Positions 19,341-61,465 of a DNA stretch of 64,000 nt are shown piece by piece. Under the pieces are notes generated by a model. It saw nothing but the letters and a program-made list of their open reading frames with translations, did not search any database and was not told the origin of the DNA. The stretch is taken from the sequence record OM718002.1; one strand, written 5' to 3'. The first letter of the stretch is position 1. The number at the start of each line of letters is the position of its first letter. The translations under genes were made by a program, and so were the position numbers.

Positions 19341-19589
19341 TTTTCATTTTTTCCAATTTTTTCTATTTTCAAATTAAACGGTATTGGCTTTTTATAGCCA
19401 ATCCCTTATTACTAAAAGTAATAGATTCTCGAACTAAGGATGGGTTATACCCCTTCTCTAATAATAAGGAATATTATATGGGACCCCCCCAAAGGGTCCC
19501 CCCCCACATAATATACTATTTATATAATTTTCTTTTTAGAAGAAAAGAGATAAATAAGAGAAATACAGTCTATTAAAGTAATGAATTTC

Positions 19590-55092: not shown

Positions 55093-55177
55093 ACATAATG
55101 ACCCTCCCTTAATTGGGAGGGTTTATGCTAACAATTCTATAGCACTCTTATTAACAGTCATCAACGAGAGAGTAGAC

Positions 55178-57061
55178 ATGAATAAAATGCTAAACTTCCT
55201 AAACCGTACGCTATATAGCGGTACTGAAAAAGTATCTTCAAAAGCTACACCAAGTCTAGAACACTTTAAAACAAATGTTGAACAAGTAGATAAAAAGATT
55301 CTACAACCCTTTAGTACTAAATTTAAAACCATTCTAAAAGAATGTTACAGTAATGAAGAGTGGGTTGAAGAACAATCATTTATTGAAGAACCTATTGATC
55401 TTGGTTCAGCTGCACGCGGTCTTACCGAGCGCGGTATTATGCGTGGTGATTGGGGACGCTTAGCGCATTCCACTATTAAAGAAGCAGAAGGTATGATGCG
55501 TACTTATAGTGGTCGTCTAAATGAAGATATGGAGGCATCTGAAATTAATGAAGTAATTCAAGATATGCCTTATAACTTCACAGCTGGCTCAGCTAATACT
55601 AGCCGTTTAGAAGAAGATGATTCTATTTTTGTTGAAGCAGATACAACTGTAGTTGAACCTCTGTCTAAGCAGACTCTGCCAAAAGTAGCAGAACTTACTA
55701 ACCAACTAGTAGAAGTTTATAACCGAATCACTGAAGAATTTACAGAAACTGGTATTGCTAAAGTTGAACAAGTTGAACAGCCAGCAGTTCTTGTAGCACT
55801 TGGTGAGATCATTAGTAGTTTTAATAAACTAATTGATGCTTCATGTGGTGCTCTACCAGTGGAAGAAACTGTTATTGTAGAGGAGGATCCGTTACCTGCC
55901 ATTGTTACTGGTCCAACTACTGAACCCATTGATGGTGAAATTCCACCTGTTGATGCTATTAATAATTCTGCGGCATTAGAAGAGTTTATTGAAGAAGTAC
56001 TAAGTACTAATCCAGAATTCATTAAATACCAAAGTATGAATGATAGTAATATTGATTCATATCTAACTGGAGATGACTGGATTATACTAAAATTTAAAGA
56101 TGGTTCTTATTATTTATACAATGCCCAGAGTGCTGGTGAAACAAATATAGAAATCATGAAAGATATGGCCGAAACTGGTAGTGGTCTTAATGGTTTTATA
56201 AATCGAGTTATTCGTGGCGGGTATGTAGAGAAGTCCATCATTAATACTCCCGGTTTTATACAAGTCTCAAATGAAGGTCTTATCGACACCATTAAGAGTA
56301 TCTTCGACTCTGGCCCTGAGATCAATCTTGATAAAAAGAAGAAAGCTATTGCTACACTGAAAAGTACCTATGGTGATGCCAAATGGGTGGCAGAAGCAAA
56401 GCTTAAAACCGGCGAAGTAAAAGTATCGAGTTACGAGACGTTCGCGTCTAATGATCCTAAGACCGCAAAAGCCAATATCACTAATGCTGTAGCTAAAGCT
56501 GATCGTCACAACCAGAAAGTTCTGGATGAGAACAGTAAGATACTAGCCCCCGTGGTTAATCTGTTCAAAGGGAATGATTGGCAAGACCCTAAGAAAGTCG
56601 CTACTCTTCTGGCTGAATGGAAACCCAATGTAAAGACAAACTTCCAAGAACCCAAATGGCCAGATAATGCTGGTGCTAAGATTAAGTTGCTTGATGCTAC
56701 CGGTATTGTGGAAGCAGCTAACGTTATCATTGACGTTCTGTCTAACAACACTAAGACTATTGCGGACACTTGGGTAGCCCAGTATCCTGACCTATCTGTC
56801 AATGGGGATATCTACAAACATAAGCTATCCACTATTAAAGATAAAGATGCTCTTGAGGATGTATATCTGCTGGCTAAAAGGGCCGATAATGCCATTCTTA
56901 ACATTCATGCATCGTACGACGACGCTAAGGTTGAATCTACATATCGAGTATTTGCTATCGACATGTTGAAACTAATGCAAGCATCTGTCAGTAGCTTCCC
57001 AAGTGGTTCAACCGTAGAGAACACCAATGAACGCAATATGGTCATTGGTATTGAAGAATAA
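55178..57061 (+). CDS. Proteolytically processed head/ejection protein (gp303-like) with an internal KTSC-like module
   Basis: Acidic N-terminal half; S/A/G-x-E prohead protease-type sites (SAALE, VSNE|GL). Confidence 0.65.
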   Translation: MNKMLNFLNRTLYSGTEKVSSKATPSLEHFKTNVEQVDKKILQPFSTKFKTILKECYSNEEWVEEQSFIEEPIDLGSAARGLTERGIMRGDWGRLAHSTIKEAEGMMRTYSGRLNEDMEASEINEVIQDMPYNFTAGSANTSRLEEDDSIFVEADTTVVEPLSKQTLPKVAELTNQLVEVYNRITEEFTETGIAKVEQVEQPAVLVALGEIISSFNKLIDASCGALPVEETVIVEEDPLPAIVTGPTTEPIDGEIPPVDAINNSAALEEFIEEVLSTNPEFIKYQSMNDSNIDSYLTGDDWIILKFKDGSYYLYNAQSAGETNIEIMKDMAETGSGLNGFINRVIRGGYVEKSIINTPGFIQVSNEGLIDTIKSIFDSGPEINLDKKKKAIATLKSTYGDAKWVAEAKLKTGEVKVSSYETFASNDPKTAKANITNAVAKADRHNQKVLDENSKILAPVVNLFKGNDWQDPKKVATLLAEWKPNVKTNFQEPKWPDNAGAKIKLLDATGIVEAANVIIDVLSNNTKTIADTWVAQYPDLSVNGDIYKHKLSTIKDKDALEDVYLLAKRADNAILNIHASYDDAKVESTYRVFAIDMLKLMQASVSSFPSGSTVENTNERNMVIGIEE

Positions 57062-57083
57062 CTTACTGAGTATGTAATGATAT

Positions 57084-57228
57084 GTAGAAATGATCCCTCC
57101 CCCTCGTTTCTACATTAGTCATAATAAATCGGAGCCAGTCCCCCTTCCAACTGGCTCCCAGAGAGTAAAACTCTTTGCTGGGCATTAATGACGATATATC
57201 GCCTCCCTTCGGGGAGGCTTTATATTTT
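57084..57228 (+). ncRNA. Putative sRNA with two C-rich loops
   Basis: TAC-N14-TATG promoter, three hairpins, UUCG terminator with a U-tract. Confidence 0.65.
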
Positions 57229-57281
57229 GTTTTTACGTATGTATATTAAAATATGTATAAACAACATAGAGTAATTATAAA

Positions 57282-57734
57282 ATGATCAAAAATGAACTTT
57301 TACCAGGGCTAATCTATGCCCAAAAAGAATTTGATAAAATTGCAGCTAATGTAAAAGACTATGATAAGTATAAAAGACGCGAAGCTGGTAGGGCAAGTGC
57401 CGTTTTAAGAAGTCTAGTGAGCAATATTGTAAATCAGAATAAACCATCCTCACTTGAACATGAAGGCAAAGTTAGTACTACTAATACTAATGAATATTTA
57501 GAAGAAGTTAATAATTACTTCTTTAACATTAATAATATTAAATTAATTTCTCCTAAACTCATAAAAGAGAAATTAACAATTGATCTAATGAATATTTATG
57601 TTAAATGGAATATGATTGGAGTGGCTGGCCGAAATGATGTGCCAATTATTGAGCACAGAATTAATGATTGGTGCGAAGTGACCGATGTCTACATTAATGG
57701 TAATAAGATAACTTCTTTACAATGGCCACGTTGA
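57282..57734 (+). CDS. Hypothetical protein
   Basis: 150 aa. Confidence 0.7.
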   Translation: MIKNELLPGLIYAQKEFDKIAANVKDYDKYKRREAGRASAVLRSLVSNIVNQNKPSSLEHEGKVSTTNTNEYLEEVNNYFFNINNIKLISPKLIKEKLTIDLMNIYVKWNMIGVAGRNDVPIIEHRINDWCEVTDVYINGNKITSLQWPR

Positions 57735-57792
57735 ATTTAAAATAAGTTGTAATAAAATACCTAGCATTACATGTTATGTATTGAAGCACAAT

Positions 57793-57877
57793 GCCCGAAT
57801 GGTGAAATTGGTAAACACAGAAGACTTAAAATCTTCCGGCTACGGTCTTGTCGGTTCGAATCCGACTTCGGGCACCA
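57793..57877 (+). tRNA. tRNA-Leu(UAA)
   Basis: Class II cloverleaf; anticodon loop CT-TAA-AA; encoded CCA. Confidence 0.95.
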
Positions 57878-57886
57878 ATTTAAATA

Positions 57887-57962
57887 CGGAGTGTAGCGCA
57901 GTTGGTAGCGCGCCTGCTTTGGGAGCAGGATGTCGGGAGTTCGAGTCTCCCCACTCCGACCA
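57887..57962 (+). tRNA. tRNA-Pro(UGG)
   Basis: Cloverleaf; loop TT-TGG-GA; CCA. Confidence 0.95.
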
Positions 57963-57983
57963 TTTTAATAATAGGTAAATAGG

Positions 57984-58277
57984 ATGGATAATAAATGGAT
58001 ATCATGGGAACATCAAATTATAGGAACAGCTCTTTACGCTATTCTTAGTGACCCTGAATTAACTAATATTCAATTAGCTCAAGGCTTACACTATCTAACA
58101 GAAGCAAAGTCTTCTGTATTACATGTTTGTAATAACCATATTACATTCACTGTAACCTATCCACATGGCACATTTAGAACCAATGTAATTAGAGAGTGCC
58201 CTGCTAGTGATACAAATACATTCAAATGGTCAGGTGTATTAGTCCGTCAAAAAGATGGAACATTCTTACCAGAATAA
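57984..58277 (+). CDS. Hypothetical protein
   Basis: 97 aa between tRNAs; SD AGG. Confidence 0.65.
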   Translation: MDNKWISWEHQIIGTALYAILSDPELTNIQLAQGLHYLTEAKSSVLHVCNNHITFTVTYPHGTFRTNVIRECPASDTNTFKWSGVLVRQKDGTFLPE

Positions 58278-58284
58278 ATAAAAA

Positions 58285-58361
58285 GGGCCTATAGCTCAGT
58301 TGGTTAGAGCAGGCGACTCATAATCGCTTGGTCGCAGGTTCAAGTCCTGCTGGGCCCACCA
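58285..58361 (+). tRNA. tRNA with CAU anticodon, most likely Ile2 (lysidine) rather than Met
   Basis: C4-G69, C5-G68, C29-G41, A73; body closely resembles bacterial ileX-type tRNAs. Confidence 0.8.
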
Positions 58362-58413
58362 TACACTAGCCTCCCACTTGGGGGAGGTTTTATACTGTCT
58401 CATTGAGGAAAAC

Positions 58414-58635
58414 ATGAATATAGTAATAATGTTAGTATTATCTATCAAAGTTGGATTATTTGGTTTCACTTCGACTAATGAGAGTAAGATCCTATTTGAA
58501 AATAGGGGACAATGTATTTCTCACCTGGATATGCTGGAGCATAAATACAAGTCTCTTGAAACTATTCGAAATGAGAATACTCTGAAGATAGCCGACAGAG
58601 ATAACCATTCGATTTATATTTTTAAATGTCCCTAG
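58414..58635 (+). CDS. Small protein with an N-terminal hydrophobic segment
   Basis: SD GAGGA before ATG 58414. Confidence 0.6.
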   Translation: MNIVIMLVLSIKVGLFGFTSTNESKILFENRGQCISHLDMLEHKYKSLETIRNENTLKIADRDNHSIYIFKCP

Positions 58636-58722
58636 GAAAAATATATTGAAACAACCATTAATCCGATTCTTAGGGGTGGTGCTAAATACCATTGAATTTT
58701 ATTTCAAGCATACGGAGTAAAT

Positions 58723-59070
58723 ATGAATAATTTAACTGAATCTCAGTATAGTGTATATTCCACATTTTGTAGTCCAAAATTAATGTGCATGTCTCTTACA
58801 GATGCGTTTATTGAAATTCATAAACAACATCCAGAAGTAAAGCAATGTATTAAGAAAAAGATCAGTGATAGCGAAACTCAGTTCATCTTTATTTTTAAAG
58901 ATGGGACTGATAATCTGATTATCAGTCGTAAAACTGAACCGTGCCCTGAACTGGATATTCCCGTAGGGGTTAGGGTCAAGCTGTCTAGTGAGGAACTTAA
59001 GAACATCCTTGCTGAACATGGTAGCCCTAAAGATGACAATTATTTTAAGCACTGGACTGACCGACCATAA
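58723..59070 (+). CDS. Hypothetical protein
   Basis: 115 aa; SD GGAG. Confidence 0.65.
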   Translation: MNNLTESQYSVYSTFCSPKLMCMSLTDAFIEIHKQHPEVKQCIKKKISDSETQFIFIFKDGTDNLIISRKTEPCPELDIPVGVRVKLSSEELKNILAEHGSPKDDNYFKHWTDRP

Positions 59071-59123
59071 TAAAAATATTACTGATTGTATAATACTATG
59101 TAAGAAGTCATGTCCATACGTTC

Positions 59124-59200
59124 GCGCTCATAGTTCAGTTGGTTAGAATACCCGCCTGTCACGCGGGTGGTTAGGGGTTCGAGTCCCCTTGGGCGCGCCA
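59124..59200 (+). tRNA. tRNA-Asp(GUC)
   Basis: Cloverleaf; loop CT-GTC-AC; G73-CCA. Confidence 0.95.
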
Positions 59201-59205
59201 TTTAA

Positions 59206-59239
59206 TTCCGTGATAGCTCAGTCGGTAGAGCAAGTGACT
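59206..59239 (+). repeat. 34-bp direct repeat: truncated 5' half of tRNA-Asn (second copy at 61389-61422)
   Basis: TTCCGTGATAGCTCAGTCGGTAGAGCAAGTGACT is identical in both places. Confidence 0.92.
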
Positions 59240-59252
59240 TTTACGATTTCAT

Positions 59253-59339
59253 TGGTAAGTACCCGAGTGGTAGCAGGGAGCGGACTGTTAATCCGTTGGC
59301 GAAAGCCCACCGTAGGTTCGAATCCTACCTTACCAGCCA
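59253..59339 (+). tRNA. Atypical tRNA-Asn(GUU) with a Tyr-like class II body
   Basis: Acceptor TGGTAAG/CTTACCA, G73-CCA; D-arm CCC/GGG; anticodon CT-GTT-AA; variable arm GGC-GAAA-GCC; T-arm GTAGG-TTCGAAT-CCTAC. Confidence 0.85.
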
Positions 59340-59423
59340 AATTCTAAAGAGTAGCTTCGGCTACTCTTTTATGTTGCCATGGGTTATCTTATGAATTAAA
59401 ATGATTTACTTGAGAGCACACTC

Positions 59424-60431
59424 ATGTTTGAATTACTATTATCGCCAGATATAGGCGAAGAGTTACCCTTGGTTGGATTTAATGAAATTATTAAATTAGG
59501 TGATCTACCTGTGGCACTAGCTGGTACTATGTCATATGTGGATGGAAATACACTATATGTTGGATCTGGACATCATACTGAAGGACAAACAGCTGCAACT
59601 GTGTTCAGACGTTTTACCATATCGCCATTTGCCGATATAGGTGCAACTGCTTCTGGAACATTCTTACCAGGGGTATCTTTAGGATTTGGGACATTACATA
59701 AGAATAACTTTATTGTTTATGGCGGTATTACTGGATGGAACTCGGCTGGTAATGGTGGCACGGGAACATCTAACTTTATACAACATTTTGATATAGCTAC
59801 AGGCAATAGGGTTGAGCGATATAGTGGCCCCGTACCACTTTGGGGCACAGCCTCCGCATCAGATGGTAATGATCTTATTCTATGCGTTAACCCAATTGGC
59901 GTAAACGCAATGCGATTAAAACCATCAAGTAAGTCTTGGCTTAGCGGGCAAGACTACGCAGGTGGTGCTCGTTCAGGTCAACAGTTATTCTTTTATAATG
60001 GTTACTTTTACCATTTTGGTGGTTGGGATAATACAAAGAACATACCTAATCTTGAAGTTTATCGATATAATGCAACTACCTTAATATGGGAGCAAACACC
60101 TTGGATGATTATACCTGCTGATAAAGGAACAATCTGGCAAGGTAATGGTTATGTAGATGGGGACTATTTTAATTACCTTAACGCTGTTGATGTCGGCGGT
60201 GTAACTAAAATGTTTGCACAACGTTTTAATATTAGGCGCCGGAAATGGGCTGAGCCATTTGAACTAGGTATCGGATTCCTCAATATTTCATCTATCGCTA
60301 AAGGTCCGGATAATAGCATGATCATTGTAGGTGGATCTAAAATGCCAGTTGGTGGTGGAGCATACATGTTGAAAAGCCAATTGTTATCAGGTATCTATCA
60401 GGTAAAACTAGCACCATTAATCATTGATTAA
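59424..60431 (+). CDS. Kelch-type beta-propeller protein (probably virion/tail)
   Basis: Repeated YVGSG, VYGG, HFGG and IVGG blades; MFELLL N-terminus. Confidence 0.75.
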   Translation: MFELLLSPDIGEELPLVGFNEIIKLGDLPVALAGTMSYVDGNTLYVGSGHHTEGQTAATVFRRFTISPFADIGATASGTFLPGVSLGFGTLHKNNFIVYGGITGWNSAGNGGTGTSNFIQHFDIATGNRVERYSGPVPLWGTASASDGNDLILCVNPIGVNAMRLKPSSKSWLSGQDYAGGARSGQQLFFYNGYFYHFGGWDNTKNIPNLEVYRYNATTLIWEQTPWMIIPADKGTIWQGNGYVDGDYFNYLNAVDVGGVTKMFAQRFNIRRRKWAEPFELGIGFLNISSIAKGPDNSMIIVGGSKMPVGGGAYMLKSQLLSGIYQVKLAPLIID

Positions 60432-60483
60432 AATAATAATATTTATAACTATTTAGATAATTATACTGGCACGATGATATTAT

Positions 60484-60595
60484 GTAAGAGTACTATACTA
60501 AAGTATTCTTAAATCTATCCACTAAACACACTCGGTGGTAGAACTTATTATAGAGTGTGTCTAAATGCCAGGGGTTTGCCACCCCTGGCTATATT
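60484..60595 (+). ncRNA. Putative small structured RNA
   Basis: TAC-N14-TATG promoter, two hairpins, GC-rich terminal stem; no ORF. Confidence 0.5.
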
Positions 60596-60715
60596 CATTG
60601 TTACTATTATAAATTCATTTATAGATGAGAAAAGGTTTTATCACCTTTTCAAAATCGGCATTTGATTCTAGTTAAAAAACTGAATCTATGCTACATTGTA
60701 ATAAAGGAGTCTATT

Positions 60716-61228
60716 ATGACTAACTCTAATCCGTTTGTAAGAACTATTGTAAAGTACCAAGATATCCTAGATGCTTTAATTCAAAAAACGAATGAGAACT
60801 GGGTTAATTATCGATCTAATTCTATTGGCCATATTGTTATTCGTGAATACAGGACTGTTGGATTATTTGTAGGTCGGCAATGTGGTAGTACAACTGCATT
60901 GATTGAGTTTGCTAATCGTCATCCTGGCGAATGTCTAGCTGTATTTGTAGAAGATAAAATTAAACAGGCTGTACTGGCTAAGTTCCAGAATGCTAAAGAT
61001 AATATTGTTTCTTGTTTAATTACACACCAACTCCGTAAATATATTCATCAACCTGAAGAATCATCTATTCAAAAAGATATTAAAGAAGAATTAATATCGT
61101 CTGTAAAATATATTCTTGTTGACAATGCCTCATTTAATCTGAACCTACGCGGTATCACTGATAAAGAATTTAACCAGTGGGTTGCAGATACTTTTGGTAC
61201 AGAGGTAATGGTGGTTCGTTTTAGTTAG
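60716..61228 (+). CDS. Degenerate P-loop NTPase-fold protein
   Basis: SD AAGGAG; VGRQCGST (Walker A-like, no Lys); YILVDN (Walker B-like). Confidence 0.6.
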   Translation: MTNSNPFVRTIVKYQDILDALIQKTNENWVNYRSNSIGHIVIREYRTVGLFVGRQCGSTTALIEFANRHPGECLAVFVEDKIKQAVLAKFQNAKDNIVSCLITHQLRKYIHQPEESSIQKDIKEELISSVKYILVDNASFNLNLRGITDKEFNQWVADTFGTEVMVVRFS

Positions 61229-61293
61229 AATTAGTAACTTTGATAGTTTCTAATAAGATTAACTACACGTTATTTACATAATGTCATAACAAG

Positions 61294-61328
61294 AAATAAA
61301 TAATACTCAGATTGTAATAATATGTAGT
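61294..61328 (+). promoter_or_regulatory. TAC-N14-TATG promoter for tRNA-Asn
   Basis: 35-bp identity with the chmA upstream promoter. Confidence 0.7.
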
Positions 61329-61389
61329 TATTACATATCTATATTAGGTTGTCAGTAACTCATCTCTAATATAAAATCGCCATAATTCT

Positions 61390-61465
<76 letters not shown>

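Follow-up and report, generated by a model that had tools for sequence, protein, structure and literature searches.

A conserved structured small RNA with C-rich loops in jumbo phage Churi and other phiKZ-like phages, possibly an anti-Shine-Dalgarno regulator

The last 64 kb (64,000 nucleotides, here called the window) of the sequence record of the Phikzvirus Churi (OM718002; genome 282,824 bp, 37% G+C) contain, in a 220-nt intergenic space at 57062-57281, an element predicted to specify a small RNA (sRNA). The transcript itself is already known, since the orthologous phiKZ locus has been published with mapped ends. What is new here is a structure supported by covariation, a family that spans three genus-level groups, and a hairpin loop, CCCUUCCA, that is invariant throughout, together with motifs in the relatives that resemble the tail of 16S rRNA and a negative result for targets in the phage genome. 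The favored reading, to which a probability of about 0.4 is given, is that of an autonomous, trans-acting sRNA of the anti-Shine-Dalgarno (anti-SD) type, with a mechanism that we infer from its design. The phiKZ-like phages serve as models for the phage nucleus and are therapy candidates. To our knowledge, a function has been assigned to very few sRNAs of virulent phages, and to none of those from phiKZ-like phages.

The transcript, its fold and its relatives

The phiKZ counterpart of the element (273998-274158, minus strand) is 96.3% identical to it over 161 nt and has matching flanking genes. According to Putzeys et al. 2024 (PMC10914365), transcription starts there at late promoter P144 (transcription start site, TSS, at 274148(-)) and stops at terminator T131 (transcription termination site, TTS, at 274007), yielding TU237, a 141-nt small intergenic transcript upstream of PHIKZ302. 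It was detected by ONT-cappable-seq, and its length and abundance were confirmed by a northern blot with probe JVO-21409 (PMC10914365). Both a short and a full-length form from P144 were found, the short one in the majority, and the supplementary Table S7 (taken from bioRxiv 10.1101/2023.10.13.562163) lists the 141-nt RNA as a non-coding RNA (ncRNA) candidate derived from PHIKZ302's 5' untranslated region (5'UTR), with no function assigned. Carried over to Churi, the phiKZ TSS corresponds to position 57085 of the window and the mapped 3' end to about 57226, and the published 141 nt fit 57085-57226; the G at 57084, which the TATG rule makes +1, is one base off the long-read TSS call. The two phages have the TATG start in common, and the Churi terminator at 57201-57218 is identical to T131. 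A discrete late RNA of about this size had been predicted from the Churi sequence alone, and the phiKZ orthologue, with both ends mapped and the northern blot to confirm it, bears this out.

In the parts of the phiKZ publication available for comparison (PMC10914365), the RNA is given without a secondary structure, C-rich loops, conservation beyond the genus or a function. It is absent from the reports of the earlier phiKZ studies by differential RNA sequencing (dRNA-seq) and Grad-seq, and a literature search found no functional study of it. The row of Table S7 for phiKZ 274148-274007(-) prints the plus strand of the genome, which is the reverse complement of the transcript, and the printed sequence ends with GTAGAAATAA in reverse complement. 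Because the plus strand is printed for a minus-strand RNA, the C-rich loops look G-rich there, and the RNAfold energy quoted in the table (-48.7) belongs to the wrong strand.

The transcript was folded as 57084-57227(+), with 200 dinucleotide shuffles as the control. Its minimum free energy (MFE) is -56.2 kcal/mol, as against -30.95 +/- 3.63 for the shuffles (z = -6.96), none of which was as stable, and the centroid and MFE structures are the same. For a longer stretch (57062-57235) the plus strand gave z = -6.31 and the minus strand a weaker z = -3.89. The fold (Table 1) consists of a 5'-terminal hairpin (P1), a three-way junction closed by P2 and enclosing P3 and P4, and the terminator. Much of this had been anticipated by a sequence-only reading of the locus: the closing helix GTCAT/ATGAC, a second hairpin with a C-rich loop (here P3 with its loop L3) and the UUCG terminator are all found in the fold, and the terminator was also called independently by a pattern scan. 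The first hairpin, thought to have 12 bp, is reduced to 10, since the extra pairs at 57082/83 lie 5' of +1. Of the third, the inner part stands as P4, whereas the outer CCCAG/CUGGG pairs share two bases with the second hairpin, and relatives do not preserve them. Similarly, the promoter proposed as TAC-N14-TATG retains its TATG, but TAC-N14 does not belong to the late-promoter elements that have been defined, and phiKZ itself does not retain it. (The consensus of the late promoters is 5'-TATG-3', with G as +1 (PMC4666361).)

Both C-rich loops, L1 and L3, have a predicted unpaired probability of 1.00. The two strands of the genome hold 154 tracts in which 7 or more of 10 bases are C, mostly in paired terminator arms or coding sequence. 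Just 3 of the 154, L1 among them, sit in a hairpin loop closed by 7 or more contiguous pairs. (The boundary rule of the script missed L3, which is evident as a looped C-rich tract in the fold.) Elsewhere in the window, at 19481-19509 (Churi 238305-238333), a C7 run and a C8 run occur together in GGACCCCCCCAAAGGGTCCCCCCCCACAT, which is unusual for an AT-rich genome.

How far does the element extend beyond Churi and phiKZ? Within Phikzvirus it is 93.7-100% identical (positions 56000-58500 of the window are 99.7% identical to phage PA7). Outside the genus, homologues were located by synteny, following the gene order RNR-beta, gp304-like gene, gp303-like gene and then the element, in the Pawinskivirus-like phages PS119XW, HPP-Temi and phiHQ (the phiHQ element being identical in PA1C, BRkr and HHBS36_1) and in phiPA3 (Miltoncavirus). 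In all three groups the stop codon is immediately followed by a nearly invariant promoter, CTATGTAATGATATGTAG, and both the arrangement of P1-P4 and a terminator of the form GCCUCCC...GGGAGGC are retained; the predicted length of the RNA is 144 nt in Phikzvirus, 180-182 nt in the Pawinskivirus-like phages and 159 nt in phiPA3. A covariance model built on the predicted structure finds exactly one copy per genome in all three groups, at 70-126 bits, and no second copy in the whole Churi genome. A blastn-short search for paralogues in the window gave matches to the terminator family only, and pattern scans for the second hairpin in IMG/VR and the JGI metagenomes returned only PA7, phiPA3 and three chance matches in GC-rich or unrelated coding DNA. 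The model has no match in the loci after the gp303-like gene of 201phi2-1, Phabio and Viktualia.

In 201phi2-1 (L012:5143-5339) and Viktualia (L018:4827-5009) another small conserved element follows the gp303-like gene. It has a TATG start and then a hairpin, AAACCCACAGC...GUUGUGGGUUU, and is without C-rich loops. Judged by its place, it may be a positional analogue of the sRNA.

The helices were examined in an unbiased MAFFT alignment of nine sequences, with partners slid by 1-3 columns as the control. Standard pairs occupy 96.2% of the cells, compared to 37-47% in the slid controls, and in five pairs both partners have changed; P1, P3 and P4 are also recovered by RNAalifold. In P1, the pair G57092-C57105 becomes A-U in phiKZ, T2P and 124.01, and the Pawinskivirus variants have more changes. 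In P3, 100% of the cells are paired and two positions are double-changed (G-C to A-U or C-G; U-A to C-G), the stem CCAGU/ACUGG reading CCAGC/GCUGG, CCAAC/GUUGG or CCACU/AGUGG in relatives. P4 has 93% of its cells paired and one compensatory position (A-U to G-C or U-A). P2 is out of register in the MAFFT alignment, and its changes were taken from single folds, where it reads GACCACA/UGUGGUC (PS119XW), GAUCACA/UGUGAUC (phiHQ) and AACCGCA/UGCGGUU (HPP-Temi). An alignment fitted to the model has 13 double-changed pairs, although it leans towards the structure and includes one spurious row. Compensatory changes thus appear in all four helices across the three genus-level groups. With three clades, this covariation can be called good, not overwhelming.

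The loops and what they may recognize

The core of L3, CCCUUCCA (8 nt; columns 59-66 of the MAFFT alignment), is invariant in every aligned sequence while the P3 stem covaries. L1 varies: it is UCCCUCCCCC in Churi, UCCUUCCCCC in phiKZ (these two RNAs also differ by one compensated stem pair) and UCACUCCU in Pawinskivirus, CCUACUCCU being a further variant, and its 3' half stays CYCCU. The pattern that would have told against the sequence-only reading, conserved stems with unconserved loops, is not what the alignment shows. In the Pawinskivirus-like RNAs, P2 and the terminator are separated by some 50 additional nt, which hold CCCCUCCUUUC and UUUCUCCUUGUUGUGUUGAUG. The latter is shared with phiPA3, where it is predicted to be largely paired (unpaired probability 0.37, as against 0.62-0.70 in the Pawinskivirus-like RNAs). 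The universal 3' tail of 16S rRNA ends ...UCACCUCCUUA, to which UCACUCCU and CCUCCUU are close; the Pawinskivirus motifs match it in 7-8 positions. If G-U wobble is allowed, L3 reads GGRRGGG and L1 reads GGGGGRGGG. The family thus presents two to four anti-SD-like pyrimidine motifs. Specific nucleotides to mutate can now be named, those of the invariant CCCUUCCA loop and of the CUCC-type motifs, and even if the anti-SD reading fails, the invariant loop still marks a candidate binding site.

On the favored reading, an RNA of about 142 nt would be made late in infection by the non-virion RNA polymerase of the phage from the TATG promoter and ended by the intrinsic terminator, and the hairpin at its very 5' end and the 3' terminator should stabilize it. 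The unpaired anti-SD-like motifs, on show in L1 and L3 and, in relatives, as UCACUCCU, CCCCUCCUUUC and UUCUCCUUG, would pair with purine-rich sequences (GGAG or GGRRGGG) at the ribosome-binding sites of mRNAs and occlude them. Since GGGAG and GGAGG are rare at the phage's own starts, the RNA would preferentially act on transcripts of the GC-rich host, or on a small number of phage ones. An autonomous gene is favored because the promoter is conserved across the stop codon, although the upstream proteins of the different groups share only 27-40% identity, because the RNA has a hairpin at +1 and a terminator, and because the gene 3' of it is variable (gp302, tRNA-Leu directly, or gp374). Autonomy is also favored by what follows the terminator, a mapped late promoter in Phikzvirus or, in the Pawinskivirus-like phages and phiPA3, a tail that reads TTTATG (GGCTTTATGTTG). 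A function in pairing or recognition, in turn, is favored because an 8-nt loop is invariant over a covarying stem and CUCC-type motifs recur. If the anti-SD reading is true, this would be a way for a jumbo phage to control translation by means of an RNA.

Are there precedents for such a design? No Rfam family reaches its gathering score in 57062-57281, and searches by E-value give sub-threshold matches only. The best resemblance is to alpha-r14 (RF02344), at 19.9 bits against a gathering score of 58.8 (E = 0.05-0.14), and it is driven by the two hairpins with C-rich loops; it is an analogy of design, not membership, and implies no common descent. The alpha-r14/NfeR1 RNAs are Hfq-independent sRNAs of alphaproteobacteria, in which C-rich motifs in hairpin loops occlude ribosome-binding sites (PMC10746234). 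Like them, the phage RNA has several hairpins and C-rich anti-SD loop motifs over variable stems. However, alpha-r14 carries CCUCCUCCC in an unpaired region of each of its three hairpins, whereas the phage loops are UCCCUCCCCC, CCCCCUUCCA and the AAA of P4, so that only two of the four hairpins have C-rich loops, and the phage infects a gammaproteobacterium. The phage RNA nevertheless shows one feature of the C-rich-seed anti-SD sRNAs, an unpaired C-rich motif conserved over variable stems. Several unpaired C-rich regions that pair with G-rich SD sequences are likewise described, in the sources available, for RsaE/RoxS of Firmicutes; these, on the other hand, are metabolic regulators encoded by the host, with another architecture and no sequence or Rfam similarity to the phage RNA. 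Phage T4 has stable RNAs C and D (species 1 and 2) of about 120-140 nt, which lie beside a tRNA cluster, are co-transcribed with it and are still without a known function. They are processed from a tRNA precursor, whereas the phage sRNA has its own promoter and terminator.

Targets were sought with RNAduplex by scanning L1 and L3 against both strands of the whole Churi genome, with the reversed loops, which have the same composition, as controls. Besides the element's own antisense strand, the best partners are the G-rich arms of phage terminators, at -18 to -19 kcal/mol (around -18.5), and these arms are already paired with the neighboring C-arms. No annotated Churi start shows extended complementarity to the loops. 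Some target sites that appeared to lie near starts belong to internal or spurious open reading frames (ORFs) by the Churi annotation, and the element itself accounts for every occurrence of the exact loop complements (TGGAAGGG and GGGGGAGGGA) in the window. The scan of translation initiation regions took in about 329 crude gene calls, each with 25 nt upstream and its opening 6 nt. At -10 kcal/mol or below, L1 had 9 regions and L3 had 7, compared to 6 and 7 for the reversed loops, and no phage target stands out. The proposal that the loops pair with SD sites, as far as it concerns the phage's own starts, thus fares no better than the controls. By the same crude start calls, 56% of the phage starts have AGGA (35%), GAGG (24%) or GGAG (16%), but the G-rich forms are rare (GGGAG 1/329, GGAGG 4/329), and for this reason most phage ribosome-binding sites would offer the C-runs of L1 and L3 only weak binding. 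The loops could instead prefer G-rich sites such as those expected in a host of 66% G+C.

Several points weigh against the favored reading. The phage initiation regions do not distinguish the loops from their reversed versions, and the strongest partners in the genome are terminator arms that are already base-paired. Since about 56% of the phage genes use AGGA, GAGG or GGAG, a generic anti-SD RNA could hit phage mRNAs as well. Late in infection, to go by phiKZ RNA-seq work, little host mRNA may remain to be regulated. Furthermore, phiKZ transcribes inside the phage nucleus, and the RNA would have to be exported to the cytoplasm. The conservation of L1 is not strict, and Hfq-type features are not apparent in the RNA, its U-tail being interrupted.

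Other explanations

Could the short RNA be a leader instead of a gene? Putzeys et al. 2024 themselves proposed an attenuator (PMC10914365), and in a cis-acting leader of this kind a conditional terminator would set the read-through from P144 into the gp302-like gene and the tRNAs, the short RNA being the aborted product. This is possible, though rather unlikely. The detection of both short and full-length forms is what a leader would give, as are the P144 transcripts TU233-236, which read through T131 into PHIKZ302 and the tRNAs (PMC10914365), and in each of the three groups the tRNA cluster is headed by the unit. However, the downstream gene is not conserved, and the terminator is followed in phiKZ by independent promoters that would make read-through dispensable: late promoter P143, with its TSS at 273977 (57256 of the window) just after the terminator, which was also seen by dRNA-seq, and middle promoter P141, which precedes tRNA-Leu (PMC10914365). 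The terminator follows the junction at once (0 nt) in Phikzvirus and after some 50 nt in the Pawinskivirus-like phages, which is hard to square with a coupled expression platform. No conserved antiterminator pairing was seen in the folds, no search aimed at alternative structures having been made, and the invariant hairpin loop would be left unexplained.

The loop is explained equally well, compared to the favored sRNA reading, if the RNA is a site for a protein. As a decoy or recruiter, the CCCUUCCA loop and the motifs that resemble the 16S tail (UCACUCCU and CCUCCUU) would titrate or recruit, for example, a host or phage factor or a nuclease that recognizes the anti-SD tail. That 8 nt stay strictly invariant while their stem covaries is typical of sites for proteins or tertiary contacts, and the match of the Pawinskivirus motifs to the 16S tail points the same way, as does the failure of the scans to find an RNA target in the phage genome. 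On the other hand, we know of no candidate protein, and the flanking genes give no hint of an RNA-binding partner. The motifs also vary in number and position between the genera, a variation more in keeping with redundant seeds for base-pairing than with a fixed protein site. On balance, a protein decoy is unlikely. A late, abundant RNA that mimics the 16S 3' tail in several copies, either as a sponge for SD sequences or as a decoy for a factor that attacks or binds the anti-SD tail, is a distinctly doubtful proposition. Such a sponge on G-rich ribosome-binding sites would shift translation from host mRNAs, or from early phage mRNAs, towards late phage mRNAs, and the RNA would be the means of a translational take-over that three genus-level groups of phiKZ-like phages of Pseudomonas aeruginosa have in common.

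The element may also be a by-product, that is, the 3'UTR and terminator that stabilize the PHIKZ304-303 mRNA, into which a chance TATG after the stop codon happens to fire. In phiKZ, T131 ends the PHIKZ304-303 mRNA (TU238) as well (PMC10914365), the gp303-like gene is the sole conserved neighbor, and terminators adjoin TATG cores commonly in Churi. But for stabilizing an mRNA the terminator alone would suffice, and P1-P4, with four covarying helices and an invariant loop across three genus-level groups, argue for selection on the RNA itself. The conservation of the promoter DNA across the stop codon, despite the divergence of the protein, and the abundance of the short RNA in phiKZ also speak for more than chance, and a by-product is quite improbable.

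A trans-acting antiterminator, which late in infection would make termination less efficient by pairing its C-rich loops with the GGGAGGG 3' arms, is very improbable. Pairing with these arms had been suggested from the sequence, and as far as the fit goes the suggestion holds, since they are the top-scoring partners of L1 and L3 in the genome. The mechanism does not, with the arms locked in local hairpins: a G-arm is transcribed only a few bases behind the C-arm belonging to it, with which it folds locally. In addition, L1 of Pawinskivirus (UCACUCCU) has lost most of the complementarity while the terminators there are unchanged, and we know of no precedent for trans antitermination by such loops.

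That the RNA encodes a small protein, the 32-residue peptide (MIPPPRF...) of ORF 57090-57188, can practically be dismissed: the ORF exists and starts 6 nt after +1, but its start codon and frame are not conserved, the ATG being lost in five homologues (ATA in phiKZ, T2P, 124.01 and fnug; ACG in PS119XW), phiHQ having an ATG but a different frame across P3 and HPP-Temi stopping after seven codons, and the start is buried in the P1 stem, without an SD. On this comparison, the RNA is taken to be non-coding. ARAGORN found no tRNA or tmRNA within the element.

The locus and other observations

The features of the locus are collected in Table 1. The gp303-like gene upstream is the one neighbor conserved among the groups, and the AACTTAC stretch of the sRNA promoter region overlaps its stop codon.

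Table 1. Positions in the window of the sRNA, its signals and the adjacent genes
Feature	Position	Strand	Remarks
PHIKZ303 homologue, virion structural protein	55178-57061	+	upstream neighbor of the element
Late promoter	57059-57084	+	TATG core 57081-57084; G57084 = +1
P1, 10-bp 5'-terminal hairpin starting at +1	57084-57093/57104-57113	+	loop L1, UCCCUCCCCC, 10 nt, 57094-57103
P2, closing helix GUCAU/AUGAC	57118-57122/57188-57192	+	from the fold; three-way junction 57118-57192 enclosing P3 and P4
P3, 9-bp hairpin GGAGCCAGU/ACUGGCUCC	57131-57139/57150-57158	+	loop L3, CCCCCUUCCA, 57140-57149
P4, short hairpin CAGAGAGU-AAA-ACUCUUUG	57159-57166/57170-57177	+	from the MFE fold
Intrinsic terminator	57193-57235	+	outer A/U helix; core GCCUCCC-UUCG-GGGAGGC, 57201-57218; U-tract
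Second late promoter	57237-57256	+	TATG 57252-57255, 3' of the terminator; serves the gp302-like gene and the tRNA cluster
PHIKZ302 homologue	57282-57734	+	downstream neighbor of the element
Cluster of six tRNA genes	57793-61465	+	Leu-TAA, Pro-TGG, CAT-anticodon, Asp-GTC, two Asn-GTT

The tRNA gene with a CAT anticodon (58285-58361) is called tRNA-Met by ARAGORN and tRNA-Ile in the Churi record. A group I catalytic intron lies at 504-749 on the minus strand of the window (Rfam RF00028, 89.6 bits, a full-length match to the model).

Other phiKZ ncRNAs (5'UTR_p40, 3'UTR_PHIKZ298 / 5'UTR_PHIKZ297 and an sRNA upstream of gp182) are similar to the present one in being short, structured RNAs that arise when transcription from a phage promoter terminates early, and differ in being unrelated in sequence. 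According to the sources available, such UTR-derived ncRNAs of phiKZ were validated by northern blot or Grad-seq. The expected place of the orthologue of 3'UTR_PHIKZ298 / 5'UTR_PHIKZ297 (phiKZ 270595-270485) is at about 60.4-60.7 kb of the window, 3' of ORF 59424-60431.

Terminators of the CCCUCCC...GGGAGGG family very often run straight into TTTATG or TTATG (for example at 55100-55128, and at many other sites). This juxtaposition of a terminator and a late-promoter core suggests compact terminator-promoter modules.

About 20 nt 5' of the +1 of the sRNA, at 57059-57067, TAACTTACT resembles the published middle-promoter motif of phiKZ, AAanTTACc, and the stretch is kept in the Pawinskivirus-like phages as TAACTTACC. 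From this likeness, the sRNA promoter might be active from the middle phase onward, though its phiKZ orthologue is classed as late.

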